The position numbers and the translations under genes are program-made. Below the pieces are notes generated by a model. The model was not told the origin of the DNA, made no database searches, and saw nothing but the letters and a program-made list of their open reading frames with translations. Shown in pieces: positions 1,016-59,729 of a DNA stretch of 64,000 nt (its first letter is position 1; each line of letters begins with the position of its first letter). The stretch comes from Vitrella brassicaformis CCMP3155 (lineage: Eukaryota; Protista; Chromerida), in contig CDMY01000252.1 in NCBI GenBank assembly GCA_001179505.1, positions 84,044 through 148,043 on the forward strand, written 5' to 3'.

Positions 1016-1028
1016 AAGCTCGCAGCTT
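1016..1028 (-). promoter_or_regulatory. TGCGAGCTT motif (within AAGCTCGCAGCTT mini-palindrome) upstream of ING-like gene
   Basis: Exact 9-mer about 73 bp upstream of ATG 943. Confidence 0.6.
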
Positions 1029-1468
1029 GTCGCGAAAAAAACAGGAAAGAGTCCATGGTGATTTGGTGCACTTGTTGCCCCGGTTGCCAGTGTTGCCCTT
1101 TCTCGCCTCATGCAGCAAGCGTCACGAATCGAGTGCGCGATGGTCAGTCGTGTTTGAATGACGAGAGAGGCTCACGCAAAGCAGAGAGGCTACTCAAGTA
1201 CAGTACTCGCATCATGATTGTTCTGTCATCATTCTCCCTTGGCGAAGTCGGGCGGCCTGCTGCATGAACTGAATGAAACAAGTCAGTCAATAAACTGAGA
1301 GATGGATGGATGGTTCCAATCTCGTTCTTCCAGTCATGCGTGTATGCATATGGACCTCAATGGTCACCCCATATTACGTATAGGAGAAATGCACCAACCC
1401 GCCCACGTCACAGAACCGTACAACCCGCCCACCCACCCGCCCGCCCACACAAACAACCATCAAGTCAG

Positions 1469-2195
1469 TCAGCAGGGCTGCGGTGCGACCTCCAGCAGCG
1501 GCACACGCCAAGGAGGACGCACGTCAATGCGTCCTGGGGCCTTGGTGGTGCCTCTGGGTGTGTCCTTGCCCTCCTGAGAGGCTGCGTGTGCGGGTGCTGG
1601 CGCCAGCGTTCTCTGAGACCTTGTGGCAGCTCGTGTGTCCGGCTGAGGGGCGTCAGGGTCGTCATTGGACCTGTCGCCGAGGATACCCAGCGGTACGATG
1701 TCCTCTGGGACTTCAGCCTCCAGCAGCCTGCATTCATGTCATTGACACAACACGCCAGCCACAGCACAGCCATTGAGGGAGGAGGAAGGGACAGTCACCA
1801 CGGTGTTGTGATGCCTGTCTGTGTCTGTGCGTTCTGCGTATGTGCCTGTGAGCCTCTCTGTCCTCTCTCCGTGCTTACTGGGTATTCCACTCGCCAACGG
1901 CCCAAACCATCCACTCTCGGTGGTGGGCGGCTGACCGGTCGGCGTACTCCTTGGCCTTTCTCTTGAAGTCCGCCTTGTGGTCCTCGTGCACTCGGTTGGT
2001 GTCGCCGTCTAGCCAGCCCGCCATCTCCTTTATCTCGTCGTCGCTCAGGCGCTGAATGCTACACACGTACTTTAGCTCCCTCCACCGGTTCAGCCGCGCG
2101 AGGGCTGCACGGACACGGAGGTACTCGTCGTCCGGGTTGTACTCTCTCTCATTGATAAAGAAAGGCCGCGGTTCTGCGCTACACCAATGGCCCAT
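1469..2195 (-). CDS. Hypothetical protein (2 exons), N-terminus MGHWCS
   Basis: Exon 2195-1879, GTAAGC...TGCAG intron, exon 1727-1469 splice in frame (…GEWNTQ/LLEAEVPEDIVPLGILGD…QPC*). No family recognised. Confidence 0.6.
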
Positions 2196-2219
2196 TTCGC
2201 CTGTTCCCGTGTGGAGTCT

Positions 2220-2232
2220 AAGCTCGCAGCTT
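2220..2232. promoter_or_regulatory. TGCGAGCTT motif in 79-bp divergent spacer
   Basis: Identical 13-mer AAGCTCGCAGCTT to 1016-1028, between ATG 2195(-) and ATG 2275(+). Confidence 0.6.
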
Positions 2233-2274
2233 GGACGGATCGCCTCCTAGTGAGAGAGGCAAAACAGGGGAAGA

Positions 2275-3098
2275 ATGAGCTCATCTGCTGTAGATGCTGG
2301 TGCTGCAAATGTGGGTGCAGCTAAACCGGCGCCTCGCAGCTGCTGGCAACGCTTCCTCAAAGGGCGGGAACTGCATGTGAGCGGCGTCCGGGACACCAAG
2401 AGCCTTACCGAGGTGAGCAGGGGAGGGGCTCACAACACACACACCGCTGCATGAAGCACGATCATTCATCTGCGTGTCTGTTTTCTGCTGCTGCAGGATT
2501 TGGCCTCGTTCCTCCGGTCCCATGGGGTGACATCTGTGGTGATGAACGACAGCGGCTTGGCCCCTCTGACATTCATTCTGCGTCAGCTTGCCGGGTGTGA
2601 GGGCTGTGTTGAGAAGCTGAGCATCGACTGCTGGGGCGTGGCGTGGACCCCCACCCTGCAGGTGGCCTTCAAGGAGGCCTGTGACAGCAACCCGCACCTG
2701 ACCACACTCACTGTGCGGCTGCGGCTCAAAGGCCTGGAGATGGTGGAGATGCTCATGTGTGTGCCGGAAAAGGTCGAGGTGCTCGATATTGGCGACAACA
2801 TGTGAGGGGCCAAAAGGCGGCGCCACACAGCATGGTGGTCGAGGGTTCGTGGATTTCTGTGTGCGTGTGAGTGGTTGCAGGATGGACAAGTCGGTGATCC
2901 CCTTGCTGGTGGGGATGATAGGCCGGTGCCACCTGCAGACCCTGCTGATGGACAAGTGCGGCGTGGGCAACAACATCGACTGGCTCAATACGTTCTACCA
3001 GCAGCTTATCGAACTGCCACACATCGCTCTGGAGTGCCTAGAAGGTGCGTCTGTGCGTCCATGCCATTAAGGAGAGGGTGGACCTTCTCTCGTGTCCT

Positions 3099-3132
<34 letters not shown>

Positions 3133-6000
3133 GTCTGGATCTCTCTCTTGTGGCTGACCTTCCGATACCCGTCCGCAAGGCGCTCAAGAACCCCTCACGC
3201 GACAAAGGTGAGATGGCAGACGGCAAATGGATGCCGTCGTCATATTGCCTTTTCCTCCATCCATTGCTTGGTGCAGTTCGGCTGCCTGGTGCGGGTCGGA
3301 CTGACCGTTCTCGTGCCATGTCGATGTGGCCCAACGGCCCCTTCATCGACTACATCCGCAACAGGGCCTTCTCTGACATCGTCAAAGGTAGGGCACCCTG
3401 CACCATCCATCCACCCACACCCACTCATGCCGCTGATGCTGGTCTCGTGTATTTGTGTGGCGCTCAGGCCAGTCTGCACGCGTGTGGTGGCCGCCGACTG
3501 AAGATGAAGTGAGATGACAACACGCCACGATAAATCCATCCACCCACACACGGAGCCGCTGCATTTGTCTTTCTCCTGTCGGCCCTCTTGCGTGTGTCCG
3601 TGTAGGCCAAGACTGATTTTTCTGGTCGCTACTGGCCGGCCAAGGTGCTGCGATGCAACCCGGTGGACCTAGTCTTCACTGTGCAGGTCAGTCAGAACCA
3701 TGACACATCAAACAACACAGCCACCGCCACACATACAAGTGCAGCTCTCTCTCTCTCTGTGTGTGTATGTGTGTTGTCATGATGTGCGCAGTATGACAAC
3801 AGTGAGGTCGAGAACGTGACGGCCCGGGACATCCAGCCGCCCAGCCCCTACCACTACGGCTGCCACACGCCACCGGCGTCACGCATCCCCTTCCCATACG
3901 CCTCAGCCGAGCCAACACCCACACCCACGCCAGGCCCACGTCGCCCTAGCCCCGCCCCCGCCCCCAGCACCCCACGCGACGGGCAGTCGTGCTCGGCCGT
4001 ATGTGGTGCGAAGGCAGAGGCCATACCCATGACGGATGGCGAGAAATCGGCGGCGGCAGATGACGTTGAGATGACCCCTGCCGATGCGGGCCCTGCCAAC
4101 AAGAGAAAGGGCAATGAGGAGCTGCCCCCCCCAAAGGCGGCCAAGAAGCTGGCGAGGGAGGGGAGTGACTGCCCTGGGGCAGACGCGGAGAAGAGCCCCT
4201 CAGCAGCGGCCCCAGGCCCCAGTGAGACCGACACGGCCACACAAGACAGAGACACGCCCACTGCCGGCAAGGGCAGCCGCAGGATCAAGAGAAAGGCTCA
4301 GGGGAAATCCAAAAAGGGCAAACGAGACTCCCAGGCAGCCGACGGAACACCTGTGAGCGCGAGTGTGAGCCCTTCCGCTGCAGCTGCCGCCGGTGGTTGT
4401 GGTGGTGGTGGCTCTCCTGCTGCTGGTGCTGTTGCTAGGGGTGACATCTATGTGACTGACCGGGAGATCTATGGCGATGGCGGTGCTGTGGATGCGGTGG
4501 CGGTGCCGGCTGAGCTGGAGGGGTGCGTGCTGGCTATTGGGGAGTTCTGCGAGTTCAGAGACCCCGAGGAGTCCAGCGACCCTTCGGACTACTTCGGTGA
4601 GTAAACCACCAATGGGGAGCTGACCGTGTTAGTGCGCTCCGTGTGTATCTGTGTGTGTGCACAGGATATGTGGTGGGTATTCAGCGTCACGAGCCCATGT
4701 ACACCGTCCGCTATGTCTACTACGACGACCATGACGTGACCAATCCATCGCACCTCATTCACCGTATGCGTATGACATTTATGATGTGATGGATGACGCT
4801 CCCAGGTGGTCCCCGTCTCGTCGAAGGACATCCGCAGAGCCGCCATCATCCCTTATGTGCAGTGGCGGGACGCTCACCTCGACATAGTCTTCGCAAAGAA
4901 GCGCGGCGACCACCTCCTCGACAATGAGGCCTCATCGTCGCCAGCTGCTGCGGCTGCTGCGGCGGCGCGCCAGTCGACGAATGATCCAGCACCAGAGATG
5001 CCAATGTTCCTTCTGCGGCCTGTGGCCCGGCGTGTGTGCCGCGAGAGCTCTGCGCGCTACGTGCCGCCCAGTGTGCTGGACTTCAAGCACCTCTCGGCCG
5101 AGTGAGGGAGGGACGGGGAGGGAGAAGGGAGAAGGGGCGGCGGGGGAAATGCTCTCTGTGTAACGATGCCATCCATATTGAGGTGTCTGTCTGTCTGTGT
5201 GGGTATCAATCAGGGTGTTTGGTCAGTGGCTGTATCGGCAGAGTCTCCACGAGCATCCGAGGCTCACCGACACCGCACGTAGGACAGACAGAGCGGACGA
5301 ACGGCAAAAACTTCTCTCTCTCTTTTCTGTCTGTCCCTCAAACAGACAGGGCCCGTCTGCATCAGAAGAGCAAAGATGAGCTGGTGGACGAGGTCGAGCG
5401 CCTGCAGAGCCAAGTCGCCATTCTCTCACAGAAGGTACCTACCTGACCTGGCTGGCTGATGACAGATACCACACACCACACACCACACACACCACACACA
5501 CCACACACACTCAGCAAACAAACAGGGGAGGGAGGAGAGTGCCGTGTCCGTCTCTCTGGGTGCTTGGCTTGTGTGGTGTGCTACAAGAACCACAAGCGCG
5601 TGGCGACAGACACGGAGGTGTCGAAGCTGCGTCGGCAAGTGGAGGAGTACCACAGCCAGATACAGACACTGCAGTCGGACCTCCGCTGCATGATCTGCTG
5701 CGAACGGCGCTTCCACTGCGTCCTCAAGCCCTGCTTGCACTTCCAGTTCTGCTCGCAGTAAGTACGCAGCCAGGGGACAGCCACAGCCACTTCACATGCA
5801 CCATGGGGGCAGAGAGTGTGTCTCTGTGTGTTTGTGTGGATGCGTCAATCAGGTGTGCGCAGCAGACCAAGAAGTGTCCGTTGTGTCGCGGGACCATCAC
5901 GGGGGTCATCACGCTGAAGCTGCCCGACGAGGACGCCTGTGACAAGTCCCCAGATGCAGCTGCAGCAGGGGAGGGCAGGGGACATCATCATGACGACTGA
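2275..6000 (+). CDS. Multi-domain protein: LRR/RNI-like N-terminus, two Tudor/Agenet-like domains, coiled coil, C-terminal C3HC4 RING (putative E3 ligase)
   Basis: About 13 exons with canonical splice sites. LRR-like VEKLSIDC/LTTLTVRL/VEVLDIGDN/LQTLLMDKC. Tudor-like GQSARVWWP…YWPAKVLRCNPVDLVFTVQYDNSEVENVTARDI and IGEFCEFRD…YFGYVVGI…YTVRYVYYDD. RING CMICCERRFHCVLKPCLHFQFCSQCAQQTKKCPLCR. Confidence 0.7.
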
Positions 6001-6615
6001 GAGAGTTGCTGAGAGACTGATGGATCGATGGATGGTATCTGACGGTTGAAAGCCTTGTTCACTCAATGCGCATTATCACACACATACACGGAGAGTCTCT
6101 CCCCGGTGCTCTCACTCTCTCTCTCTTTCGAGGCGTCATAATGCTAGTGTGGCATTTCCTGCCTGCCTGTTGCTCCGGCCGTCGCTGAAGAGGCTGCATT
6201 TGGCTTCCCACCGCATCGCCGATGAGCCGTCAAACACAGCCGCACCAGCGCACGTCAGAGCAACACGCAGACCAAAGACCCCTTCCGCGAACACACGTAC
6301 TGTCTGTCTGCAAGGCACCTGGCCTGGCAAACAAGTATATGTGTAGACAGCTATGCAACGCCACCATTGTCTGTCGCGCGGTGGGTGTGCTTCCTCCTCC
6401 CTCTCGAACGTATCCTCTTCTCAAGTGTCTGCTCGTGAAGAAGACACGTTCGAGTGGGAGGACCCAGCCCACACCAACGAACGGGTCGCGAGAAAAAGTG
6501 TCACATGAGGCCAACAAAACTTGCACAAATAGCATCCACACACAGCTCTCTCTTGTCTCCAGCACTAGCAGCTGGCTCACTGACCCACAACAGCACACCA
6601 CAAGCCAAGCGACAC

Positions 6616-7569
6616 TCACACAGCCACCAGCTCGCCCTGTTTCGCTCTCTCCAGCCATGAGGGCTTGACGTCGGCCGCCGCCAGCTCAGCCCGCATCTTG
6701 TCGATGGTCTCCTTGTAGTCGGGAGTGCCGAATATGGCCGACCCCGCCACAAACATGTCTGCCCCCGACTGCGCCACCTCCCGGATGTTGGCAGGACCCA
6801 CACCGCCATCGATCTCCAGCCGGATGGACCGCCCGCTCTTGTCGATGATCTCCCTGGCCTCTCTCAGCTTGTCGAGCGTGTAGCCAATGAACTTCTGTCC
6901 ACCGAAACCGGGGTTGACCGACATGAGCAGCACGATGTCCACCTTGTCGATGGCGTACTTGAGCCAGTCGAGGGGCGTCGCGGGGTTGAACACCAAACCG
7001 GCCTTCAGCCCCGCATCCTTGATGACGCTGAGGGTGCGGTCGGGATGGTGGCTGGCCTCTGGGTGAAAGGTGATGTACGACGCCCCCGCCTTGATGAAGT
7101 CGCCCACAAGCTGGTCCACAGGCGTCACCATCAGGTGCACGTCGATAGGCGCCGTGACGCCGTGCTTGCGCAGCGCGTCGCACACCAGCGGGCCGATCGT
7201 CAGGTTGGGCACATAGTGGTTGTCCATCACGTCGAAGTGCACCGTGTCGGCCCCGGACACAAGCACGTTGTCCACCTCCTCTCCGAGCTTGGCGAAGTTG
7301 GCAGACAGGATCGATGGCGCGATAGTGAAGCCGTCTGTGTGGGGGTAGCCGTCGTCCACCGCCATCCGCAGCTGCGTGTGGTGGGTGCGGCCGCGTCGAA
7401 GGCGGTTTGTCTGCGCCATGCTGCTGGCGGGGCTGCATCGCGTGGGTGCGGTGACGAAGCCTTCGCTCGCCTCGAGGGACGGCACGACGACCAAGAGAGA
7501 AAGGGTGTCGTCATCGGCAGCGGCGATGGCTGCGAGCAGAGCAAGGGAGATGGCGAAGGCCCGAATCAT
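6616..7569 (-). CDS. rpe: Ribulose-phosphate 3-epimerase with bipartite (signal + transit) plastid leader; intronless
   Basis: [58 protein letters not shown] are RPE motifs. N-terminal [18 protein letters not shown] is a signal peptide, followed by ..ASEGFV and an S/T/R-rich transit region. Confidence 0.95.
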
Positions 7570-7683
7570 TGCGGTGCGCGCTGAAAATCAAAGTGCTGCC
7601 TGCTGACGTCCCGAGTGCTTGGGAAGGACAGCAGCCTCGGAAAGCAACCAGATCTGATGCGGGCTGAAAGATCTGCCTTCAGT

Positions 7684-7692
7684 TGCGAGCTT
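7684..7692 (+). promoter_or_regulatory. TGCGAGCTT motif, RPE/AGPS spacer
   Basis: Exact 9-mer about 33 bp upstream of the AGPS ATG. Confidence 0.6.
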
Positions 7693-7724
7693 GGCTTCGA
7701 GGGAGGGCGGCTGCAGAACAGAGA

Positions 7725-11483: not shown

Positions 11484-12472
11484 TCAATGGATCTCCACTT
11501 TGCGGGCCTTGCCCTGCTCGGGGGCGGTCTTGGCAAAGGTGATAGTCAGCACGCCGTCCTGCACACCACATCAAACACACACAGCGAGAGAAAACGATAT
11601 ATGCAGATGTATGTGTGTGTGTGTGTGTGTGTGTGGCCATCCATCCATCCATCCCTGTGATGGTGCACCCACCTCAAAGGAGGCCTTTGGGTCCTCCGTG
11701 TTCGCGTTGCCGGGCAGGGACAGCTTGCGCTCGAACGTGCCGACGGCCCGTTCGCGCAGGTGGTAGGTGGCCTCCTCCTTGGCGGCCTTTTCGCTGACCT
11801 CCTTGGCGGCCTCCTTGCCCTCGACCTCAGCGGTCTCGGGCACATCGCGCGACCACCTGCGCTCGCCGCTGATGGTGAGCACCTTGCCGCCCTCCTCGTC
11901 TGTGATGGATACCTTCACGTCACCTGCAGGGCACCGAATGGCCGACAATGGGTGGGTGAGGGTCGGTTGCGGTGTCTGGAGTGTGTCTGTGTGTGAGCCG
12001 ACTCGCCTTTTTTGACGCCCGGGCAGTCGACGGTGACGATGTACTCCTTGTGTGTCTCCTGGACGTCAACGCTCCCCACTGCACACACACGTTAAGCACA
12101 CAGACCACACAAAGTCAGCCGTGAGTGAGACACCACCAGCCATCACACCGCCTCGCCCCATCCACTTCACTCACTCATCGGCTTGGGCGGCACCAGCCTG
12201 GTGATAGCGGGATCACTGAACACGCGGGAGAAGAACTCGCCGCCGATGTCCTTGTCGAACCGCTTGATCAGCTGACTCATCTCGTCGCCAAGCATCGCCA
12301 AAGGGTGGTGGACATCCCGGGGATGGTGGAAGGGACGCAGATCCCCGCGGAAGTACCGTGCCTGGCCGCACTGTGCCAGCCCGTTGAGGCGCGACGCGAT
12401 GCTGGACAGCACAGCGGGGTTGTTCAACGCTCCGAGGAGCGACTTGCTGGCAATCTGCACCGTCAGCGACAT
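11484..12472 (-). CDS. HSP20: Small heat-shock protein (HSP20/alpha-crystallin), probably mitochondrial
   Basis: Spliced product contains SVDVQETHKEYIVTVDCPGVKKGDVKVSI…LTISGER…ERAVGTFERKLSLP…ASFEDGVLTITF. The N-terminus lacks acidic residues and ends in an R-3-like QARYF. Confidence 0.88.
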
Positions 12473-12603
12473 GTTGACAGATCTTCGGACGCAGCTCAAG
12501 ATGGCTAATCAGGACGAACCAGAACTGAGAAGACGATAAGACGAGAATGCCGAGAGACAGAGGCAAATCGGACGACAAGACGCGCATCGCGAGCTCAAAT
12601 CAC

Positions 12604-12612
12604 AAGCTCGCA
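12604..12612 (-). promoter_or_regulatory. TGCGAGCTT motif upstream of HSP20
   Basis: Exact 9-mer about 132 bp upstream of ATG 12472. Confidence 0.55.
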
Positions 12613-13202
12613 CCTTCCGAATCTGTGCGGCCTCCCACCTCCCCCCCAGAAAGCACCTGGCATCGCGCACACGACTCTGCGGCCTGTGTGTCGCTCGTCG
12701 TGGAAATGGGCCATCTCCCTCCCTGGGAGCCTCCCGACAGATGACTACGGCGGCATGCGGCACCTGAGTGCGTCCTCGGCCTCTCGGCAAGGCGCCCGAT
12801 ACGAGCAGGTGCGGGCTGAGTAGGGAGTTGTGCGCCTCGGCGGCCACTCTGGCTGTCGAGAGAGGAAGGGGAGCCTTGTCCCTTGTGGCTGCGGTCTCTC
12901 ATTGCTCGGCATGATGCTGCCGGCGACCGGCAAGGTGTCTTCAGCTTGCTATTGCTCGTGTATAGCCCATTCTGCTGCTTGCGAGGACTACTGAGGGGTG
13001 GGTCAAGATTGACTGTGCGCATCCTCGAGTCAAGTCACCATTGCGCGACAAGACAAGACAGCCGAGTTCTGTTGTGGCGGCTTCCTTCCTGTGCTGTTGG
13101 CTGTTGGCGATATGTCTATCTGCTTGGTCAAGAGGAGATTGTCCAAGAGCATGGCTGGCACCGATGCAGCACCGGCAGCTGTAACCCCCGTCCTCCCCCC
13201 CC

Positions 13203-17556: not shown

Positions 17557-17559
17557 GGT

Positions 17560-20921: not shown

Positions 20922-22568
20922 TCAGGCCAAGAAAATCACAAAGAACACCACAAAGAAGACCAGGATCAAGAAGATCTGCACGACGCACCCACACGAGAAG
21001 CTAGCTGTAGAGAGTGTGTGCAAGTGACACGTAGGTGCGCTCCGACGTGTGTACCTTGAGGATGAGCCCCCGGTTAGAGGATATCCTGTGGAAGTAGTCG
21101 AGTAGCGCCGTCTGACCCGCACGCACATTCGCCAAGGTCGTGTCCACGTCATCGTCAATCCTGCATCCAACCCAATCAACCGACCAGCCGTCCACCACCA
21201 CCAATCCAACGCACACACACACACACACACACCACCAGCTCTGTCAGGACTGCCCCGCCCGTCCTTGTCTCTCACCTTCTTATCATCTCGTCCTGCTCCT
21301 GCACGAGCCCGGCGACGCGTTGGAATATCTGGGCCAACTCACCTATCACCTTCTGCACGTTCTCCACTGCCTGACCGACAGAGACGACACACACATTAAC
21401 ATCAACACGCACGATGAAATGAATGTCAAACAGTCATGTAAAAGGGAAAGGTTATGCGGTGCTCCGGCCGATTGATTACCTCTGCCCTTGATGTGTGGTA
21501 CGTGGTGCCCCGGTCCAAGAGCTGGGTCTGCTGGCCGCTGGTTTGAGAGAAACCAACCAAGGCACACACGCCATCGAGGGAAGGAAGGAGTAAGTGTTTG
21601 TCATGGCTCCCCCCCCTTACAGCCGCCGTCTGTGGGAGTGGCTGTTGCGTACCCTTCCATGTCGATGTTGGCGGCGGCTTCAGGCGACGTGTGCTGGAAG
21701 GGGTAGGCACTCGACGCTGACGAACCTGCAGGCAGGCAGGCAGGCAACGGTGCGTTGAAGACAGTGACACGTGTGTGTCAGGGTGCTCACTAGCCATGGT
21801 GTCGCCATACATCTTCCGCCTGTTGTCCTGCTTCTTCATTATCTGCAGCCAGCACAGCCCAGCACAGCACAGCACGGAACCCGACACGCACATCAACACC
21901 CATCCATGGGATGCCCAATGCACCCACTCCCACTCCTTTGACGTGCCTCGGTTCTGAGCTGCAGGATGTCCTTGAAGTCCTTGGTGAGCTCAAGCAGCCT
22001 GGTCTTGAGCGCCTCGACGATGCTGGTGGCGTGCTGCCGCTCGTGGCGGTTGTGGCTGAAGCCCTCCCGCGCTGCCCTGTCCAACGTCTCGATCTTGGTG
22101 TTCAGGCCCGTGATGGTCTGGGAGAGCCATGACAGTCCACACGCGCAGAGATAATGGTTGGTAGATGTGCGAGTCCAGCAGTGGCCAGCTGGCTGGCTGA
22201 GTCGTCTGACGCACCGACCTGTTTGATGTCGTATGTGAGCTCTTGTATCTGGGCTGTCTTGTCGTTGAAGATGCCTCGCTGCTTCGCCACTGACACCACA
22301 CACACACACACACACACACACAGAACAGAACCGAATTCGCCCTGTGTGAGCTGCCTGCCGTCTTTTGCCTCTCTGCTGCACACTCACATTTGGCGAGTTC
22401 CTGTAGCTTGAGAGATCCCGTGTGGATCTCCCTGCCGACTTCATCAGCCACGACGTTGAAATGGCTCTCCACGTGCCCCGGCTGCCGTGGCTTGGCCACA
22501 TGAGGGATGTGGGAGCTCAGCTGCTCCGTTATCTCGAAGAACTCGGCCGTGCGGTCCACACACGCCAT
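20922..22568 (-). CDS. STX5: Syntaxin-5/Sed5 (Qa-SNARE, cis-Golgi)
   Basis: N-terminal Sly1-binding DRTAEFF, LAKQRGIFNDKTAQIQELTYDIKQ, SNARE motif SRAEAVENVQKVIGELAQIFQRVAGLVQEQDEMIRRIDDDV, SSNRGLILKIF and a C-terminal TM helix. Confidence 0.93.
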
Positions 22569-25739: not shown

Positions 25740-25876
25740 CGTTGTTTGACTTGAAAGAATGGTCGACAAGGAGTGGAGACGCTTCAAAGCTCGCCATACG
25801 AACCCCCACGCCCCCCGTCTCCGACTCAGGGTGGCAGACTCCCGCCGCCCGTCGCAGTGACTGACAATCCCAGAAT

Positions 25877-26753: not shown

Positions 26754-29480
26754 TCAGTGAGTGGTGCCGAAGATGTGTGGGCAGTGTTTGAAATCGTTGT
26801 GTCGCTTCTTCTCCCAGTAGCTGCCCCTGAAGGCCCACGTGGCCTCCCCCGTGTACTTGTCCCTTGACCGCTGGAACCACAGCGGCGAGTAGTCCTGCTC
26901 CCCACGCGGCCGCTTCTTGGCCGCCTCACGCTGACGGTCCTCCAGTCTCGTCTTCTCACTCGAGGCCTCGTCCAGCCGGCCCTCCTCGTAAGCACGCTGG
27001 TCGGGGCGGAATCGCGAGTCGGTCCGCGGCATGTGGGCACCGGCCTGTCGGTCGTATTCGGGCGTGATCTCGTTGAGCTCCATCGCCATCTGGCTGTAGT
27101 TGAAGTACTGCTCGGCGTGGGCGGGCAGCGGTGTGGGCGACCACAGCACGCGACGAGTGGAGGGGTCTGACTGGATGGACTCCCAGTCGACCTCAGGGAT
27201 GGGCATCGACCCCACGGGCGGCGGATGGTGGTGATATGAGTGCTGGCTCGACGACGACCCCTTGCGGCCCCTCGCCCGCTTGGCGGCGGCTGAGCTGGGG
27301 TCCTGCGTGGCAGAGCCGTCCACCTGGCCGCTGGCCTCAGACATGAGCGAGGATGAAGTCGACCCACGCACATGGTGCTGCAGCAGCGGCTCCTGCTCGG
27401 GAGATGTGTGCTGGGGGTGTGGCGGGGTGGGGGTGGGGCGCGAGTTGCCGTCGCTTGGGATAGGTCCGGGGTCGCACCTCTCGGCCCAGACCTCAGCGCT
27501 CCAGCTGCCCCCGAGCAGCCAGTGTGTGCGGCCGTGCTTGTCCTGGACGACGCCCCGCAGCTGGTGCATCTTCTTGTCGAACCAGCCCTTGCGCAGCAGC
27601 TCGATGATGGCCACGTCGCCCGTGCTGTGGTTGGTCACGAGCACCGTGCCGTACCACTCCACCCACAGACGGCCGAACAGGATGTTGTGCACCACCATGT
27701 GCGGCCGCGCCCACGTGAAGTGGTCGGCCTCGGCCACCCGTGGCAGCACGCAGTGGATGCTGCCCGACGGGATGGCCTCCACCGACTTGCCGATGAAGCG
27801 GTTCTTGAGATGCACGTGGCCCCAGATTACAAAATCGTCACTCTCGGCATGATATGCAGACACCGGCGGGTGGTGACCAACCTGAATGCAGACACCATCA
27901 CAGAACACACACATCCATGCGACCACATCCTGACCTCTCCGCCTCCCTCCCTCCCTCCCTCCCTCGCTGACCTGCTCAGCAATGAATCGGAACCCCCTGT
28001 GTGTGATCTCGTAGGTCTCTCCGAGCAGCGGGTTGAAGGGCTTGACGAACCGCCCCACCGTCGAGGCGAATGGCGTCACCGAGAAGACCGCCATGTACAC
28101 GAGCCGCTCCAGCGGGTCTGTGAGGCTGGCGGCCGTGCGCACCAGTGCCGTGTACTGCAGGTCCTCCGCGAGCCGCTGCAAAAAGCTGGTCGGCTCGTTG
28201 AAGAAGATGGGCATGGAGATGCGGCTGAGGTCCTTGCCGATGAACTCCTTCAGGATGTTCCACAGGCTCACCTTGATCTCCGCGCGTGGCACGGGCAGCC
28301 GTGTGCGCCGCTGGATGCCGCCCGCCGGCTGGGAGCCGTTGCTGACCACCGCTGCAGATGAGCTGACGGTGCCATAGTCGGGCCGATAGACGAGCGGCGA
28401 TGCGCCGGCAGCTGCTGCTGTCGACTCGTCGATAAGCTTTTCGGCAGCGTCGAAGAAGTCCTCATAGTCGTCCCATTCGCCCTCCTCTTCCTCCTCATCA
28501 GCATTAAGCACTCCTCCCTCCTTGGAGCCAAGTCGGGATGCCGCCCGCGCCAGCTGGTGGTTCTCCTTGCCGATGTGCAGGAAGGTGTTCTCCAGGGCCA
28601 TGTGCCGCCGCGTCTCCTTCTTGGCCCACGCCTCGGCCTGCGAGAACTGCTGGTCGCTCAGGGCCTCGATGGTCCACAGGATGCTCTTCATCTGATCGAG
28701 GCACTCGGTGACCTGCTGCTGCGCCGCCTCGTCCTCGAGCTCGCCCACGATCCGTATGGCCATCTCGTGGTGCTTGGCGTAGTCGTGCATCTTGTCGCGC
28801 AGGCGGGTGCGGGTCTCGCCCAGCTGCTCCACAAAAGTCAGCTGCGGCACCGTGCTGTTGTCGTCATCGGTGGCCTCGATCGACGGCGTGGGCGAGTAGT
28901 TGGGCAGCGAGCCGTCGGTGGTCCTTGCGGGCGGCTTGAGGGAGGCATTGTGCAGGCCGCCCTTGGCCTTGGTGAGGGCGTCCAGCCACCGCTCCTTGTC
29001 CTCCTTGCTCGCAGCCTTGAGCGTCACTCTGCCGCGGGGAGTGGCGATCTCGAAGCGATGGGCGTCACCGTGGCAGAGCGACAAGCCGCACTCGCTGAGG
29101 GCGAAGCTGTCCCGCAGCGGCCCGCCCTTCTCGTGTGAGTACTTGAGCACCCCCAGCTCCACAGTGAAGTGCCGGGGCCGCCACGCCTTGACATAGTTGG
29201 TCCACTTCATGAGCTCCCCCTGGTGGAGGACGTAGGGGGTGACGGTGATGTTGCACGTCTCCGAGTGTCTGTCGAGCTCTGACATGTCGAAGTCGCACTC
29301 GCAGACCATGCACTGGATCAGCGGGGTCGCGGGCCTGCGGGACTGAGTGCTGCCCGTGTGTCCTCCGATGGTCGGCGAATGGACACCTGGAGATTGTGCT
29401 GAAGAGGACGCTGAGTGACTGTTGACTGCGCGGGGAAGAATAGGCAAGCCGACCTCTTCACCAGTACCTGGTGAGCGCAT
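26754..29480 (-). CDS. Oxysterol-binding-protein-related protein (Zn-finger, PH, FFAT, ORD)
   Basis: PH domain GELMKWTNYVKAWRPRHF…WLDAL. FFAT EDFFDAAE. ORD SLWNILKEFIGKDLSRISMPIFFNEPTSFLQRL, KPFNPLLGETY, EQVGHHPP, DSRFRPDQRAYEEG. One in-frame intron at about 27973-27884. Confidence 0.93.
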   Translation of the reverse strand: MRSPGTGEEVGLPILPRAVNSHSASSSAQSPGVHSPTIGGHTGSTQSRRPATPLIQCMVCECDFDMSELDRHSETCNITVTPYVLHQGELMKWTNYVKAWRPRHFTVELGVLKYSHEKGGPLRDSFALSECGLSLCHGDAHRFEIATPRGRVTLKAASKEDKERWLDALTKAKGGLHNASLKPPARTTDGSLPNYSPTPSIEATDDDNSTVPQLTFVEQLGETRTRLRDKMHDYAKHHEMAIRIVGELEDEAAQQQVTECLDQMKSILWTIEALSDQQFSQAEAWAKKETRRHMALENTFLHIGKENHQLARAASRLGSKEGGVLNADEEEEEGEWDDYEDFFDAAEKLIDESTAAAAGASPLVYRPDYGTVSSSAAVVSNGSQPAGGIQRRTRLPVPRAEIKVSLWNILKEFIGKDLSRISMPIFFNEPTSFLQRLAEDLQYTALVRTAASLTDPLERLVYMAVFSVTPFASTVGRFVKPFNPLLGETYEITHRGFRFIAEQVSEGGREGGRRRGQDVVAWMCVFCDGVCIQVGHHPPVSAYHAESDDFVIWGHVHLKNRFIGKSVEAIPSGSIHCVLPRVAEADHFTWARPHMVVHNILFGRLWVEWYGTVLVTNHSTGDVAIIELLRKGWFDKKMHQLRGVVQDKHGRTHWLLGGSWSAEVWAERCDPGPIPSDGNSRPTPTPPHPQHTSPEQEPLLQHHVRGSTSSSLMSEASGQVDGSATQDPSSAAAKRARGRKGSSSSQHSYHHHPPPVGSMPIPEVDWESIQSDPSTRRVLWSPTPLPAHAEQYFNYSQMAMELNEITPEYDRQAGAHMPRTDSRFRPDQRAYEEGRLDEASSEKTRLEDRQREAAKKRPRGEQDYSPLWFQRSRDKYTGEATWAFRGSYWEKKRHNDFKHCPHIFGTTH

Positions 29481-29739
29481 AGGGACCTCCCCTTACCACC
29501 AGCAGTCTCGAGATCTCCGGGAGAACGCAAAATGAGGAGAGCGTCTGCAAGCTTAGCTTTGCTGTCCTTCAAGCTTCGGTGGAGAGCGAATGAGGAGAGA
29601 TATCCACGTCCTCGTGTCTTCGATGAGGAAGCTGTGTGTGCAGATCTTCAGAATGCCCCGTTCAAGAAAGCTCACCACCCGTTGCAGGTCATCATTGACC
29701 CTGCCTGGTCCTGATCTCAAGACCTCTGCTGCAGCTCCA

Positions 29740-35048: not shown

Positions 35049-36074
35049 TTAAGATTCCCCCGCCCCGCCGGCGTGTTTGGGTGTTGTTGTCTGTCTGGTC
35101 TCTTTGTCTCCTTTAACGTCGCAGTAGAGCTCGTATGGGTCTGGCTCTTCCTCTTCCTCTGCAAACTCCCAGACGCCCAAGCGGTTGTCCGAGATGGCCT
35201 GCACGCCCAGCTCTTTGGCCATCTCATGCATGGCGTCCAGGTTGGACTCGTCCTCGAGGTCGATCCACAGGGGGTCACCGTAGCACCGCTGGACATGCGC
35301 ATCTGAACACACACACACACGCGCAGAGGATGGATGTACTTGTGTCCGAGTGCGTTCGTTCGCTCGTTGTTCGGCGCTTTGCGTACAGTTTCCGTTGTCA
35401 ATCTCACTCCACATGTCGAGGTAGAACTGTTCGAAGCCCCTGCCAAGAACACATACACACACACATACGGTGAGCATGCGGTCGTCGGTCAGCACCTTCG
35501 GACCTTCCATCTTTGCAGCACTGCTGCCAGATCCGCTCAAGTGCCCTGGCCGAGACCTCGTAGCGACGGAAGGGCCGAGAGGCATAGATCTCTGCAAGCG
35601 CCTTAATTCTCCCGCGCCTGCTATTGGCCCTCGGGAGGCCTGCACACACACACATACCGTCACACACAGGTCAGGAGACCTCTTCTCTGACGTACCAACG
35701 TCTTCCAATGCGCAATTCAGTATCGCCATGAAGGTGCCGCTGGAGTTGAGCTCCCCATTATCTATCGTATTGTTGATGCATTTGCGCGCCCGCCGCTTAT
35801 TCGCGGCATACGCCATCTCTCGCAGCCGGCGGGTTTCGCCAAATGCCGGCAGCTCGATTCCCCGCAAGAAGCGGACCAGCCGATGCGCCCGAGTCGCCTC
35901 AAGCCGCGTCTTGTGCTCACAGCCATCAGCGGCAAAGGGTCGTCCCGTCCGGCTGCGCAGAGCGTCCACGCGCGCCGGGTGGACGAACGAGGGAAGGGAA
36001 GGCGAACAAATCGCGGGGTGAGGTCCAAGTTGGAGCAGCAGGACAAGACAACTAACGCCCAACACACGCTTCAT
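35049..36074 (-). CDS. Hypothetical protein with signal peptide plus transit-like region (putative plastid)
   Basis: MKRVLGVSCLVLLLQLGPHPAICS, then PSLPSFVHP and an R/S/T-rich stretch. Three microsatellite introns. Globular-looking C-part GFEQFYLDMWSEIDN…YGDPLWIDLED…LGVWEF. Confidence 0.6.
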   Translation of the reverse strand: MKRVLGVSCLVLLLQLGPHPAICSPSLPSFVHPARVDALRSRTGRPFAADGCEHKTRLEATRAHRLVRFLRGIELPAFGETRRLREMAYAANKRRARKCINNTIDNGELNSSGTFMAILNCALEDVGTSEKRSPDLCVTVCVCVQASRGPIAGAGELRRLQRSMPLGPSVATRSRPGHLSGSGSSAAKMEGPKVLTDDRMLTVCVCVCVLGRGFEQFYLDMWSEIDNGNCTQSAEQRANERTRTQVHPSSARVCVCSDAHVQRCYGDPLWIDLEDESNLDAMHEMAKELGVQAISDNRLGVWEFAEEEEEPDPYELYCDVKGDKETRQTTTPKHAGGAGES

Positions 36075-36381: not shown

Positions 36382-36390
36382 TGCGAGCTT
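36382..36390 (+). promoter_or_regulatory. TGCGAGCTT motif upstream of seipin
   Basis: Exact 9-mer about 190 bp upstream of ATG 36580. Confidence 0.55.
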
Positions 36391-36579: not shown

Positions 36580-37737
36580 ATGATTAGCCGGGCCATCGGA
36601 GGGGCGGGCGTGGCTGCGGTGGAGGGCTACCTGCTATGCTCGCGGCTGTGCGGGGCCTGCCTGATCGTCCTGCCCCTGGCCCTGATGGCGTCATCCATCG
36701 CCTACTGGAGCGTCGTCGACCGCCTCTTCCCATCGGCATCCCAGCTCTTCCCCATCCACTTCACATACGGCACAGACGACACACAGCTCGACCTCTACCG
36801 GCCGGAGGGATCCACCATGTCGGTCACGGAGGCGCATGTGCCCTTCAGCCACCGGAACTGGGACTTTGAGCCGCCCGCACACACCGAGGTAGTCCTGGGT
36901 GTGGAGCGGCCGGTGTATTACTTGCCGAGGGTGGAGATCAACTCGGGGCCTTACGTGGAGGTGGACCTGTCGGTGCAGTTCCTCCTCCCCAGGCGGCTGC
37001 TGAACTCCTTTGATCTGCCCCTGACCATATCGATGGAGATCATCAGTCGGGACGGCCGGCGGGTGGCACGCTCCACACGATCCCTCCTGCCAGCGAAGCC
37101 CTCTCTCTTCCGGCAGCTCTTCGACTACTTTGTGCAGCGATCCCTGGTTGCCCTGGGCCTGTGGAATGACGTGCGGACCTTCACCGTTCTCCTGATTGAC
37201 CGCTTCCCCTATTCGTCCCCCGACTGGCTCGGCCGCGCCATCATCCGCCTCGCCCCGGCCATCCCTGTCGACCGGGCCTTTCTCCAGATGCGACGCCGTA
37301 TGTGGTTCTACCCCATCAGAGCTTACCTGGGGGCCCATCGGTGGACGGCATACGTGCTGTTCGTCACGGTGGCGTCGATTATGGCGACTGCATGGGCCTG
37401 CTGCCTCGTATCACTGCTGTGGGTCGAGAGGATACTGCGCAAGAGCACATCTCGGGAGGGCTTCATGAACATGGAGCAGCCACCTGTCGCTGGACCACTG
37501 CCGAACGTCCGCATTCCTCGGCCCCCACCCGTCGCACCACTAGAGCCGCCGCCGATGCGTCGCAGCGCCCCCCCGTCCCCCGTCCGTCCCATGCCCCGCA
37601 CCGCCCCACCATCACCGCCATTGCAACCCCTTCGTGTGGAGAGAGGGGAAGCAATGGCGGCACAGCAGAGGTCGCAGACACGGCAGGAAGTCCCGGTATC
37701 CTCTATGCCGCCACCGGCCGACATCGGCCGTGGATCT
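36580..37737 (+). CDS. Seipin (BSCL2-like), piece A, truncated by gap; intronless
   Basis: N-terminal TM, FPIHFTYG, VEVDLSVQFLLP, ARSTRSLL…SLFRQLFDYF, PIRAYLGAHRWTAYVLFV second TM. This is the seipin luminal-domain topology. Confidence 0.75.
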
Positions 37738-38037
37738 NNNNNNNNNNNNNNNNNNNNNNNNNNNNNNNNNNNNNNNNNNNNNNNNNNNNNNNNNNNNNNN
37801 NNNNNNNNNNNNNNNNNNNNNNNNNNNNNNNNNNNNNNNNNNNNNNNNNNNNNNNNNNNNNNNNNNNNNNNNNNNNNNNNNNNNNNNNNNNNNNNNNNNN
37901 NNNNNNNNNNNNNNNNNNNNNNNNNNNNNNNNNNNNNNNNNNNNNNNNNNNNNNNNNNNNNNNNNNNNNNNNNNNNNNNNNNNNNNNNNNNNNNNNNNNN
38001 NNNNNNNNNNNNNNNNNNNNNNNNNNNNNNNNNNNNN
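37738..38037. other. Assembly gap (300 N), seipin locus
   Basis: Run of N. Confidence 1.
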
Positions 38038-41174: not shown

Positions 41175-41474
41175 NNNNNNNNNNNNNNNNNNNNNNNNNN
41201 NNNNNNNNNNNNNNNNNNNNNNNNNNNNNNNNNNNNNNNNNNNNNNNNNNNNNNNNNNNNNNNNNNNNNNNNNNNNNNNNNNNNNNNNNNNNNNNNNNNN
41301 NNNNNNNNNNNNNNNNNNNNNNNNNNNNNNNNNNNNNNNNNNNNNNNNNNNNNNNNNNNNNNNNNNNNNNNNNNNNNNNNNNNNNNNNNNNNNNNNNNNN
41401 NNNNNNNNNNNNNNNNNNNNNNNNNNNNNNNNNNNNNNNNNNNNNNNNNNNNNNNNNNNNNNNNNNNNNNNNNN
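41175..41474. other. Assembly gap (300 N), seipin locus
   Basis: Run of N. Confidence 1.
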
Positions 41475-45078: not shown

Positions 45079-45079
45079 A

Positions 45080-47220: not shown

Positions 47221-47225
47221 TGTGT

Positions 47226-50795
<3,570 letters not shown>

Positions 50796-51335
50796 CGCTC
50801 AGCACAGGGCCCGCTTCATTCGGCAACCGAATGAAGGCCCGACAAAAGAGCCAATCAACACAGGCAACACCGACCGACACACCGACTCTTGCCGAGTAAG
50901 AGAGGCCAAAGAGCACCGAAGGTCAATCGGTCGTCACACTGTTGTTGGAGCCGATGAAACACACACAGCCCCTCACTGACCGCTCAACTCACTCACTCAG
51001 CTCCCTGGCTGCAGGCTTGCAAGACTCTGAAGGGCGGTTTGAGAAAGCGAGGCTTGCAACTCTTCCACTGAGAAGCAACTGATGCGACTGATCGGTTGAG
51101 CTGCCCTGGGAAGAGGCCCGTGTGTGACGCCCCTCTGCACGCTTAGCTCGCAGACCCCCGAGCTCGCAGAAAGATGCGGAGGACAACGCGCTCTCAGGAG
51201 CCTTCCAGGTGGGTACAGGCATGTATCTGATCGATGTTATCCATCATAGATATGTCTGCAGGGTCACTTCGATGAGCACATCTGTCAAAGAATCTCCACA
51301 AGCAGCAGCTGCAGCTCTGCAGTGAGCCATTGTGT

Positions 51336-52651: not shown

Positions 52652-52659
52652 TGCGTGTC

Positions 52660-55240: not shown

Positions 55241-57033
55241 TCATTTGGCTTTCTTACTGCCGTCCATCTCCCTCTCCACGGCGTACTCGGCCACGTTCTT
55301 GAGGTTGCCCAGCGTCGCCTTCACGGCCTGATGTAGGTAGGGACACGTTCACAAACCAAGCCACATCCATCTCTACTGTCCTCTCTCTCTCTCTCTCTCT
55401 GCGTGTGTCCGTTAGTTACCGTGATGTAGTCGAGGCTCTGGTAGGTGAGGCCATGGTCCTCGCAAAACTGACGAATCCTGAAACACACAGACAGGTGCTA
55501 GTGAGGGACTATGGTGGTGGGGTGTGTGTGTTTGTTCGCCGTCCATCGAGATCTCACTGCAGTGACTGACCTGGGCACGAGTTGGGGCTGTCTGTACTGC
55601 GGCATGGAGGGGAACAGGTGGTGCTCAACCTGGCAGTTCAGGTAGCCCATCCACCAGTTGACTGAATATATGACACAGACACACATCGATCCACACACAT
55701 CTCTCCTCCCTCCCGACAGGCTGGCTCCCTCCCTCCCTCGCTCACCGAAGGGGTTAGGGTCGACGTTGATGGTGTAGTCGATGCCGTATTCGACCCAGTT
55801 CTTGTGCTCGTCGGCCCGTGTGGTCGGCAGGTGGGTGTGGTTCAGGCTGAAGTTGCCGAACAGGTACACGCCGCTCACAAACATGGTCATGTAGAAGGTC
55901 GACAGACACATCAAAATCGACCAGTCCGACGGGCACGAGTAAAAGTGCGCCACGTAGCGCAGGATCACAAACAGCAAAGTCACCGGGTCACGCCGCCCCT
56001 TCCTGCAATGCAGAACGCGCACACACAACCATGGCCGGATGGATGGATGGTCGCTGCCCGAGTCAACGCGCCGCGCCCGTGTGTGTGTGTGTGTATGTGT
56101 GTGTACCTCAGGATGTATTCCTTGGGGTGGAGGTAGAAGTGCCAGAAGAAGACGTTGAGCACCGACGTCAGCGGCAGGAAGGTCAGGTGCTGGTAGCGGA
56201 TCCACCAAGTCGGCGTCATGGCAGCACGACGACCGCGCTCCAACGCCTAAACACAGCACCACACACACAAGTGTGAAGAGACCCACGCCGCACTCTCTGC
56301 CCGTCCCTCTCTCCCTCACTCCTCCCTCTTTCCCTGTGTGCCCGTCGCTTACATCCTTGTAGAAGGCGACGAAGGGCAGCGTGTCGACGTCGAGGTCGTG
56401 GTCCTCCTTCTGTGGAGTGGCATGGTGTTTGTTGTGCATGTGGTTCCACTTCCAGCCGTATGTGATGAGGCCGAAGGAGATGAAGATGGTCTGGATGGCC
56501 TTGTCCACCGGGATGATGCCCGTCAGGGAGTGGTGGCCGCCCTCGTGCTGGATCCACCCCGACCGGCCGCCAGCCAGGCCCCCGATGAACATGGACAGCA
56601 GCACCGACCACCAGGTGCCCGCCTTGAGCAGCACGAAGCTCACCACGAACATCGAGATGATCTCCACTATCCTGAAGGCCACGTGCGCCAGGTCGGGCTT
56701 GAACCAGCCCTCCGCCACCAGGTCGCTCCGCAGCTTTCGGTAGTCGGCCAGCATCTGCTGCGCTCGCTCACTCTTTTCCATGGGCTTGTCGGCGGGCCTG
56801 GAGGGCAGCGACTTGAGGATCTTGTCGGCCCGAGGACTGCGCTGGTGGAAAGCGACGTAGGCATCGGTGGCGTCCTGGTTGGCGTAGTAGGCGATGACGG
56901 AGCCGCCGGGGTGCCGCTTGACAAAGTCGGTGATGTCGTATATGCGGTCACGCACCTGGATCTCGACGCGGCCGGACGCCGGGGGAGCCTTCCGTGATGC
57001 AGGGAGGAGACGAGGCGACGCCTGCTTGCACAT
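55241..57033 (-). CDS. Front-end fatty acid desaturase (cytochrome b5 fusion; delta-5/6/8 type), ER
   Basis: HPGG haem motif, His boxes HEGGH, HNKHH and QVEHHLFP, and a C-terminal KKAK* (KKXX ER-retrieval). Confidence 0.93.
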
Positions 57034-57084
57034 GGTGACGGGACGGGACTGGGGTTGCCGCTGCAAGAAAAGGACTGCACTGGC

Positions 57085-57169
57085 AAGCTCGCAGATCCGG
57101 CTGCGAGCTTAGCCGAACGATCCCTGGCCGCGGCCAGGTTTTCTCCGCCAGGTTTTGCTGAAGCTCGCA
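57085..57169. promoter_or_regulatory. Three TGCGAGCTT motifs upstream of desaturase (two form an inverted repeat)
   Basis: AAGCTCGCA at 57085 and 57161, TGCGAGCTT at 57102. Confidence 0.65.
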
Positions 57170-57874
57170 ACATGAATCTGGGCAGTCAGCATTCATTCTC
57201 AGCAGGAGAACACCTTCGACCAGGACGCACAAGCGATGGCGGCCGAGAACGGCAACATGGATTGGGACGCTGGGCCAGGGCGAGGACCGATACCAAACCA
57301 GAACCGGCAGGAGGAGGGGAGAGGGCGGCACGAGGGTAACAGCAAGTTCAACAGTGAGTGCCTATGATAGATAGAGACTGAAAAAATTCCGTTGTCAGTT
57401 GCCGAGTCTGCCACCTACCCCATCTGTCCGTACGAACGAGTTGACTACAGCGTTATCCGTCAGGCTGTCAGGCATCATGCTTTTCATCCCATCATATCGC
57501 ATCTCATCGCATCGCATAAAGGGGCTGGCTGCGGAAAAATAAGGTGTAGTGCAGCTGCGCAGCCAGCCAGCCAGCCAGCCGGACATGACCAACGTACCAA
57601 CACACGATCGAAGGAAAACTGCCTGCCTCGGCAAACGAACGAGACCACTCTCGGTAGGTAGCTAGTCGCTGCATTGCCAGACCACCCCACGCAGACAGAC
57701 GCACAGCCAGTGCTGCCTCTCGCATGCCGTCACTCACAGAGACCGAAAAACGAACGAGGCAGAGCACTCTCTCCACCGTACGTTGCTGTCATATAAAGCA
57801 TAGCGGTGTGCCTGTGGCACACACGGCACGGCTGCCTTTGTTTCTTCTTTCCGACATTGCCTGCATCGCATCCA

Positions 57875-59661
57875 TCAGACGGCATACGATGGGCTCTCTG
57901 ACTTGCCGGTCTTCTGCAGTTTGTCTATGCCCTCAACCACCCGTGCCGACACGATGGTGTCCCCCACTCGGATGTCGCGCAGGAAGTCCGCACCAGACAC
58001 CGTGTAGCCAAAACACGCGTACCTGAGTGAGGCACACACACACACGTGTGGTGTGGGGTGGGGTGGTTGGTCGGGCTGGGTGTCATTCTGGTGGCTTGGC
58101 GAGCGTGTCTGTCTGAGCGTACCTTCCGTCCATGAAGTTTTTGCCGGCCGGTGTGAGGTCCGAGTCGAAGAGCAGCCAGAAGAACTGTGAGGAGCCGCTG
58201 TTGTTGTCGAACTCTGAGCGAGCCATCCCAAGCGCACCGTACGCCTGTGGAGGATAGACACGCAAGAAACGACGATCATGTTATGGCCCACAGGCCGATG
58301 CTTTAGCATGTGGTAATTTCGGCTGACCTGGAACGGGAGCGTTGTGGCCGCGAATCCCCGGCCATCCTCCTCTGTTGTCTCGCCGTACATGGGCGCATTG
58401 TCGCCCTGTCCACACACACATCACACACCAACACACAAGTGTCACCCATAGGCCTTTCCTTGTCTTCTCCATGCCTCCCTCACCTTGACGAATATCTCAA
58501 GTGGGACCCTCCTCGGCTCCTTTGCCCCAGTCGGCACATATCCCTCCGGTCCGCTGTCAGGCTTCCCCGTCTGCACCACGAAGCCGTCAGAGCGGCTGAT
58601 CTTCATCGAGTCGTAGAAGCCCTTGGACACCAGGTCGACGAAGTTGCCGGCCGTCACTGGGGCGTTCCAGCCGTCAACCACCATCACGAGCTTGGCCTCG
58701 TCGTATAGACGGCCTTCCAAATCGAACTTGCTGCCGTCGGCCTTCTTGACCACCATCTCCACCTGACTCACACACGGCACGGCACACAGACACATACACA
58801 CACGTCCTCACTCACACATGCAGAAAAGACAGACAGGCAGATGCTCTCTCTTTGTGTGCCATGTGTCACCTTTGCTCGCCCCTGCAGTTGCGGCAGGCTG
58901 GCGAATTCTTGTGGCACAGGGACCTTGTAGTTCTCCGGCACCATGAGGGCCATCAGGGCGGTCATTTTGTCGGCTATGCCGCCCTGCAGCTCCAGGCACT
59001 TGTCCAGCTTGGCGGCCTCCTGAGGCGAGCCACGTGACGCCGGCTCGCGGATGGCCTCTATCAATGGGTCAACCGACGCACCGATCGACGCCAGCAGCTC
59101 CTTGGCCTTGTCCTCCGACTTGGGTCGGATGGCCTTGAGCAGGGACGCCTCCTTGTCCCTGATGAGCACTCTGGCCTTGTTAAGGTGGTTGACGGCCGAG
59201 TCGAAGCGCTTGACGGGGATGTCGCCCTTGACCGCTTCTAACTCCACTTGCAGAGCCGTCACGTCCTTGTCCTGGATCGGCAGGCCGTAGCGCAGCAGAC
59301 TGTCGGCGTCCTTGTTGACACGTGAGCCCGCTGCCGATGGAGCGTTGAGCCCGCCCTGCCACGACTTGGCCGCATTCGACGGGAAAGAGGGCAGCAGAGG
59401 CGAGAGTGCCGCGATGCCGACAGCTGCACGTGCCGCCTCTTCTGCATAGCCTCTTCGTGATGTGCATTCGGCGTTTTCAGAGGCTGCTGGGCCCGTCGAT
59501 TGTTGCTCGGGGAGGGAAGGGCGTCTCAAGGACGGGGTACGGGTCAGGCGAGTTGCATCACTGAATGAATGCTGCACTCTGAACGTCCAGGCAACCTCAG
59601 AAAGGCCCAGGAGCGCGGCCGCGCAGATGGCGACTGAAGATCTTCTGACGCCCATGCCCAT
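57875..59661 (-). CDS. CYP38: Thylakoid-lumen cyclophilin CYP38/TLP40 with tripartite leader
   Basis: [87 protein letters not shown]. Leader is a signal peptide (…VAWT/FRV), a transit region, then SRR…hydrophobic…SNA. Confidence 0.88.
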
Positions 59662-59720
59662 GCCGGCGTTCTCTTCTTCCCCTTCTCCTTCTCCTTTCCT
59701 CACGGTCCTCCCGCAGAGTC

Positions 59721-59729
59721 TGCGAGCTT
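59721..59729 (+). promoter_or_regulatory. TGCGAGCTT motif, CYP38/kinase spacer
   Basis: Exact 9-mer between ATG 59661(-) and ATG 59828(+). Confidence 0.6.

Follow-up and report, generated by a model that had tools for sequence, protein, structure and literature searches.

The nine-base word TGCGAGCTT recurs in a 64,000-nucleotide (nt) stretch of the genome of Vitrella brassicaformis CCMP3155 (C252:84044-148043, hereafter the window) and is probably a DNA-level element of nuclear promoters, situated near the transcription start, bound by a putative sequence-specific factor and serving transcription in one or both directions. Word statistics were taken from a 264-kb sample, made up of the window and C22:1-200000, and from the whole assembly (72,700,666 bp in 1,064 scaffolds); fifteen 3-kb loci were examined besides. 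The gene models used were built from a codon-bias track, trained on long reading frames with a high GC content at third codon positions, from Pfam matches and from RNA contigs, and are not the official annotation; gene identities are based on single exons or on RNA-contig reading frames.

The window contains nine exact copies of TGCGAGCTT, as compared with 0.45 +/- 0.64 expected from 100 dinucleotide-preserving shuffles, none of which reaches nine. The genome-wide count called for by the original prediction, an earlier reading of the window by eye, gave 3,799 copies on both strands versus 339 for a control word with the same letters reversed. The 264-kb sample contains 19 copies, where an order-3 Markov model predicts 1.23; the word thereby ranks near the top of the non-repetitive 9- and 10-mers, and two of its 10-mer extensions, TGCGAGCTTA and GCGAGCTTAG, are also among the most over-represented non-repetitive words. 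The order-3 model was used because sub-words of the motif are themselves enriched, making maximal-order Markov statistics uninformative. The over-representation of TGCGAGCTT is therefore a real signal, beyond base composition.

The signal is, furthermore, tightly confined to this one word. The 7-mer core GCGAGCT occurs 16,942 times genome-wide versus 11,150 for its control, and as most of this excess of ~5,800 is accounted for by the exact 9-mer, the flanking T at both ends matters. Comparison of 100 genomic copies with 13-nt flanks, together with 47 sampled copies, extends the consensus to Y-TGCGAGCTT-R-G-C, and TGCGAGCTTAGC is a frequent form among the genomic copies. The near matches listed in the original prediction are present as well; words with one mismatch, as a class, are barely enriched in the window (22 versus 14.7 expected). 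Five of them, at 7282, 22936, 24034, 44059 and 60690, are inside coding sequence and are probably there by chance. With the one-mismatch class hardly enriched and several of its members coding, the signal comes down to the exact 9-mer and a small number of tolerated variants, the commonest of which is TGCGAGCTC, with all eight of its copies in the sample non-coding.

By the codon-bias track, none of the 19 exact copies in the 264-kb sample falls in coding sequence, and coding sequence points away from them. Outward-minus-inward coding potential around these copies is 0.54, as compared with -0.004 +/- 0.065 around random non-coding sites, and a value of 0.54 is reached by none of 2,000 random sets. 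When the motif is oriented, coding in the sense direction covers 0.34 of the positions 3′ of it and coding in the antisense direction 0.06, whereas 5′ of the motif antisense coding covers 0.30 of the positions and sense coding 0.04. Most of the 19 copies are located in gaps between head-to-head genes, and copies are also present in single-gene, one-sided promoters, namely at 1016 and 12604, in the promoter of a desaturase gene and at C22:38074. Within the window, an exact copy is present within 300 nt of 11 of the 15 putative gene starts, and a near match accompanies one more. Pfam matches in the reading frames beside the window copies identify an ING-like protein, a RING-finger protein, ribulose-phosphate 3-epimerase, a FAD-linked oxidase, seipin, a cytochrome-b5/fatty-acid desaturase and a CYP38-like thylakoid protein. 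The proposal that the motif serves gene starts in general and is not a regulon site is upheld by the lack of any functional relationship among these adjacent genes and by the thousands of copies in the genome.

The positions and strands of the nine window copies are exactly as originally listed, and all nine are non-coding and near start codons, at distances of 24 to 189 nt from an ATG supported by Pfam, RNA or coding score. The first (1016..1024, minus strand) is 72 nt upstream of ATG 943, the start of a same-strand, ING-like reading frame for which the Pfam match to the ING N-terminal domain is weak (E=0.0013); the upstream gene has the same direction, which makes this a one-sided promoter. 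The second (2220..2228, minus) lies between a minus-strand reading frame that begins only 24 nt away, at ATG 2195, and a plus-strand gene with a zf-C3HC4 RING finger (ATG 2275), to which the motif is antisense. The third (7684..7692, plus) occupies the 155 bp that separate the ATG of the epimerase gene (7569, minus) from that of the FAD-linked oxidase gene (7725, plus). The copy at 12604..12612 (minus) precedes by 131 nt a putative ATG at 12472, in a reading frame without a Pfam match, and is adjoined by an inverted copy with two mismatches, CGCGAGCTC, on the plus strand at 12588-12596. That at 36382..36390 (plus) is separated by 189 nt from the downstream ATG of seipin at 36580 (Pfam Seipin, E=5e-9), a reading frame that is cut by an assembly gap at 37738, and the divergent reading frame on the other side starts at 36074. 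Three copies are clustered upstream of the desaturase gene (ATG 57033, minus), two in the sense orientation (57085..57093 and 57161..57169, both minus), the second of which is 127 nt from the ATG, and one at 57102..57110 (plus) that is the inverted partner of the first across an 8-nt gap. This inverted copy has no plus-strand gene downstream, the next gene being on the minus strand and ending near 57374. The last copy (59721..59729, plus) lies between the CYP38-like gene (ATG 59661, minus) and an unnamed plus-strand gene (ATG 59828). The nearest of the five assembly gaps is more than 600 nt from every window copy, and the 1.5 kb of N in the window could conceal additional ones.

Assembled transcripts suggest that the motif is also close to the start of RNA synthesis. 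Seven assembled RNA 5′ ends, from the four genes that could be examined, are all at distances of 0-17 nt from a copy, which may have either orientation. Two transcript contigs of the epimerase gene (L024 and L025) begin at 7677 and 7671, stopping 6 and 12 nt short of the antisense motif at 7684-7692. For the RING-finger gene, spliced contigs from two runs begin at 2241 (L021/L026) and 2246 (L163), 12 and 17 nt past the edge of the antisense motif at 2220-2228. The first exon of the minus-strand desaturase gene spans 56352-57072, and the end of contig X1 at 57072 is 12 nt beyond the sense copy (57085-57093). For the unnamed plus-strand gene, a contig from run X6 has its first base at 59721, precisely where the sense copy starts. 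Contigs of public runs were aligned over 55300-61200, where three runs represent RNA, as judged from canonical spliced joints, and one represents DNA; a repeat filter masked the ends of the CYP38-like gene in this layout. RNA depth is approximately zero over 57073-57269, and the inverted copy at 57102 thus drives no stable plus-strand RNA. Exact-protein look-ups, the source of the epimerase and RING-finger ends, were also made with three versions of the FAD-linked oxidase, of which two gave no match and the third only a bridging contig; those with the oxysterol-binding protein (ATG 29480, minus) and with a 106-residue reading frame gave only genome-colinear contigs.

The RING-finger locus has two further features. 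The gene caller starts the protein at GTG 2377 (818 residues), and an in-frame ATG at 2275 gives 852 residues, the product on record for another RNA run (L163); the true start codon is ATG 2275. In addition, the spliced L021/L026 contig, 6.7 kb in length, traverses three genes on alternating strands, from 10333 to 2241, which suggests overlapping or read-through transcription across head-to-head promoters.

In the arrangement that we favor, an abundant and putatively sequence-specific DNA-binding protein would bind TGCGAGCTT in the short gap that precedes a gene or separates two head-to-head genes, and help to place the transcription machinery, with RNA synthesis then starting ~0-20 nt from the element on one or both sides. 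Occupancy would increase where copies are grouped, frequently in phase with a 12-bp period. Such an element would contribute causally to initiation, and the 19 copies have no TATAAA within 150 nt. A more specific version can be put forward only tentatively, and we regard it as rather doubtful: a single TGCGAGCTT would act as a two-way setter of start sites, one factor fixing both starts of a head-to-head pair ~6-17 nt beyond either edge of the motif, with the core promoters interleaved and the 12-bp tandems reflecting cooperative in-phase binding. Head-to-head starts in Vitrella appear to be <50 bp apart, around one copy, and this architecture differs from the divergent start pairs of yeast, animals and Toxoplasma, which are separated by 100-200 bp. 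If paired starts are indeed separated by only a few tens of bases, this would be an unusual and very compact design for a bidirectional promoter.

Several observations weigh against assigning the motif this role. The epimerase and oxidase genes are joined by a single deep-run contig (L021), as are the CYP38-like gene and its neighbor by record 8 of run X7; with two deep contigs bridging gene pairs, transcripts may overlap the motif rather than start beside it. The 5′ ends listed above are the ends of assembled contigs, and so approximate the RNA 5′ ends at less than nucleotide resolution. Four of the 15 putative gene starts in the window have no exact copy within 300 nt, and in the 200-kb C22 sample only about a fifth of the promoter gaps carry one; the element is consequently not universal, and the window is richer in it than average. 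The predominance of tandem copies, described below, could also result in part from local duplication rather than from selection.

The enrichment between head-to-head genes, in either orientation and in clusters of like copies, and the housekeeping type and functional diversity of the genes concerned, would also be expected of a chromatin or architectural site, for example a nucleosome-excluding or insulator-type sequence comparable to those of BEAF-32 or DREF, that occupies the promoter gap and has no direct role at the start site. Such a site, at the center of a nucleosome-free region, should be ~50-100 nt from the RNA 5′ ends, which are in fact within 0-17 nt of the motif, and we therefore consider this explanation unlikely.

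The original prediction described the element as oriented and as reading in the sense direction of an adjacent gene. Descriptively, the latter is correct for eight of the nine window copies, although this is nearly automatic given that most copies are located between head-to-head genes, and the data do not establish that TGCGAGCTT has a fixed orientation with respect to the gene. In 13 of 19 cases the gene on the sense side is the closer of the two (p=0.17). Genome-wide, 443 occurrences of ATGG lie within 10-40 nt after the sense word and 397 after the antisense word, and the corresponding counts for CCAT are 352 and 365. The sense excess has the expected direction but falls short of significance (chi-square about 2). 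As each of these counts is lower than the sample background of ~650, the comparison has little power and is not proof of symmetry. For both the epimerase and the RING-finger genes, however, the only copy at the RNA 5′ end is antisense, and the description of the element as oriented was not sustained.

Copies of TGCGAGCTT are also strongly clustered. There are 221 close pairs genome-wide, with gaps of 0-30 nt, as compared with about six expected for random scatter, and these comprise 152 tandem, 30 divergent and 39 convergent pairs, an excess of tandem over inverted pairs (69) with p=2e-8. The gap is exactly 3 nt, a 12-bp period, in 27 of the first 100 tandem pairs and 12 nt or less in 85, and divergent pairs have preferred gaps of 4-10 nt. 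A scan of metagenomes and transcriptomes for the 12-bp tandem form returned only chance matches and 12-nt coding repeats of unrelated organisms, and is uninformative both on relatives and on transcription of the motif.

These data bear directly on whether TGCGAGCTT is a strict directional initiator, with transcription starting inside the motif and only the sense orientation active, as for the metazoan initiator (Inr) or TCT elements. The RNA contig that begins at the first base of the sense copy of the unnamed plus-strand gene is what an initiator would generate, the one-sided promoters carry sense copies (1016, 12604, 57085, 57161 and C22:38074), and tandem pairs are more numerous than inverted ones. 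The antisense-only copies beside the RNA 5′ ends of the epimerase and RING-finger genes nevertheless fit a strict initiator less well, as do the copy at 57102, which faces no gene, the near equality of convergent and divergent inverted pairs and the non-significant tests of orientation. We consider an initiator improbable, and slightly more so than an architectural site.

An element that acts in the RNA, within 5′ leaders and in the mRNA-sense strand only, and that determines translation, stability or localization, has a still lower probability. Sense copies are positioned 24-189 nt upstream of start codons, as such a leader element would be, and at least one RNA contig has the motif at its 5′ end. 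The antisense-only copies of the epimerase and RING-finger genes are, however, beyond the assembled ends of the RNAs, the desaturase contigs stop short of the motif and the copy at 57102 is in an RNA-free stretch. Convergent inverted pairs are as common as divergent pairs and there is no Rfam match at the gathering threshold anywhere in the window, and a structured RNA family was rejected on the latter basis.

The least credible origin for TGCGAGCTT, to which we assign almost no weight, is as part of a dispersed repeat or of a transposon end, or as a dinoflagellate-type relict of a spliced leader left by reinsertion of mRNA copies: it would account for thousands of copies and for tandems with a fixed short period, but both orientations occur, the identity of the flanks is at the random level (25.6%), exact matches extend on average by only 0.5-0.6 nt and a repeat search finds nothing longer. 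Some copies on small contigs do have identical 35-nt contexts, one such context being shared by C4:4490-4524, C24:3822-3856, C94:63-97 and C107:2038-2072 and another by C9:227-261, C91:6098-6132 and C91:7576-7610; these are probably copies of repeated units or uncollapsed assembly fragments. There is no sign of a spliced leader, as colinearity of the RNA contigs with the genome begins at base 1, and none of the loose ends listed is at the motif.

The promoter element that we favor most likely represents an undescribed, lineage-specific motif. Full-text searches of the literature for TGCGAGCTT, its complement and its 7- and 8-mers returned only primers and unrelated sequences, and searches on chromerid promoters and motifs returned no description. 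The chromerid genome paper contains no promoter analysis (PMC4501334), and promoters for the transfection of Chromera, which has been achieved, were chosen empirically (PMC12407925). The nearest analog is the gCATGCa motif of Toxoplasma gondii, which is found in 44% of promoters, at genes of any function, with a peak ~82 nt upstream of the start at the center of the nucleosome-free region (Markus et al. 2021, PMC7854901). The factor that binds gCATGCa is unknown, and bidirectional promoters are common in Toxoplasma (PMC7854901). Both words are short, enriched at starts and associated with unrelated genes, but that of Vitrella differs in sequence and, at 0-17 nt from the assembled RNA ends, is seemingly much closer to the start. 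GCATGC itself is not enriched near TGCGAGCTT, with one copy in 5 kb as compared with 0.44 per kb in other non-coding DNA. The motifs bound by ApiAP2 proteins in Plasmodium include TGCATGCA, GTGCAC and CACACA (PMC7854901, PMC11417369). As had been anticipated for the apicomplexan motifs then known, neither gCATGCa nor any of these matches TGCGAGCTT. ApiAP2 motifs are likewise short (6-10 bp); the proteins that bind them form the dominant family of transcription factors in the wider lineage, and ApiAP2 genes are present in chromerids too.

Short, abundant and lineage-restricted core elements at or near TATA-less starts, which take the place of canonical core elements, are known in other protists, as exemplified by the Inr and flanking promoter region (FPR) of oomycetes, the Inr and M3/M5 motifs of Trichomonas and the AT-rich initiator of Giardia. 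These initiators are directional and overlap the start site, whereas the Vitrella word is found beside RNA starts in both orientations. Drosophila DRE/BEAF-32 sites, Ohler motif 1 and the motifs of human bidirectional promoters are associated with head-to-head and broadly expressed genes, are clustered and occur in either orientation. These animal motifs are positioned tens of bases upstream of starts that are 100-200 bp apart; the Vitrella word is unrelated to them in sequence and its paired starts appear to flank a single copy much more closely.

Chromerids are free-living photosynthetic relatives of the malaria and Toxoplasma parasites, and comparison of TGCGAGCTT with gCATGCa could reveal how promoter signals changed toward parasitism. 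A dominant word at thousands of gene starts would also aid the prediction of start sites and the construction of gene models, could guide the design of expression constructs and could be used as bait for the cognate protein, to ask whether this is an ApiAP2.

Near matches in non-coding positions may add to the sites in the window. The one-mismatch word TGCAAGCTT at 29546..29554 (plus), 66 nt from the ATG at 29480 (minus) of the oxysterol-binding-protein gene, is probably a weak site. Two further one-mismatch words, TGCGAGCTA and TGCGAGCTC, are 16 nt apart on the minus strand at 51144..51168, in a non-coding gap flanked on each side by outward-directed coding sequence, and are probably sites. 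A non-coding gap of the same type contains GGCGAGCTT at 25787..25795 (minus), which is possibly a site.

A second sequence accompanies TGCGAGCTT. AGATCT is ~9 times enriched within 150 nt of the motif, with 10 copies in 5 kb versus 0.22 per kb in other non-coding DNA of the 264-kb sample, and AAGATCTG, of which AGATCT is the core, occurs five times in the window (1.65 expected). Four of the five are in promoter gaps that contain the motif (7668-7675, 12478-12485, 29641-29648 and 59788-59795), the other being at 20971-20978, and AAGATCTG is probably a second promoter element. Palindromes resembling GCAGATCTGC recur in the flanks of genomic TGCGAGCTT copies. A different palindrome, TGATCGATCA, occurs 16 times in the 264 kb, counting both strands, versus 0.33 expected; all are non-coding, none is near TGCGAGCTT and they could represent a microsatellite-like (GATC)n unit or another signal. 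Runs of the telomere-repeat-like AAACCCTAA, which recall the telo-box of plant promoters and leaders, directly follow the 3′ side of some motif copies (C7:4653-4698, C22:137313-137347 and C256:73351-73400), and AAACCCT is present at 0.40 per kb near the motif versus 0.10 elsewhere in the sample, the former value being based on two copies only.

Longer conserved contexts are also seen elsewhere in the genome. A word that includes CCGTGAAAC(C/T)G is located beside or between motif copies at C33:172162-172207, C358:42031-42078, C260:126967-127012 and, outside the window, C252:64378-64429; the core CCGTGAAAC is absent from the window. Two groups of loci each share ~40 nt from the motif to a start codon on the opposite strand, the first ending in ...GGCTTTYTCCCAT (C98:86624-86665, C101:1451-1493, C217:19465-19508, C253:56717-56759 and C246:106668-106711) and the second in ...CCTAGGGTGCTCCAT (C7:84316-84351, C40:85495-85526, C61:76642-76672 and C251:80210-80240). 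Both groups resemble gene families present in several copies, or duplications of a gene-start module, with the motif included.

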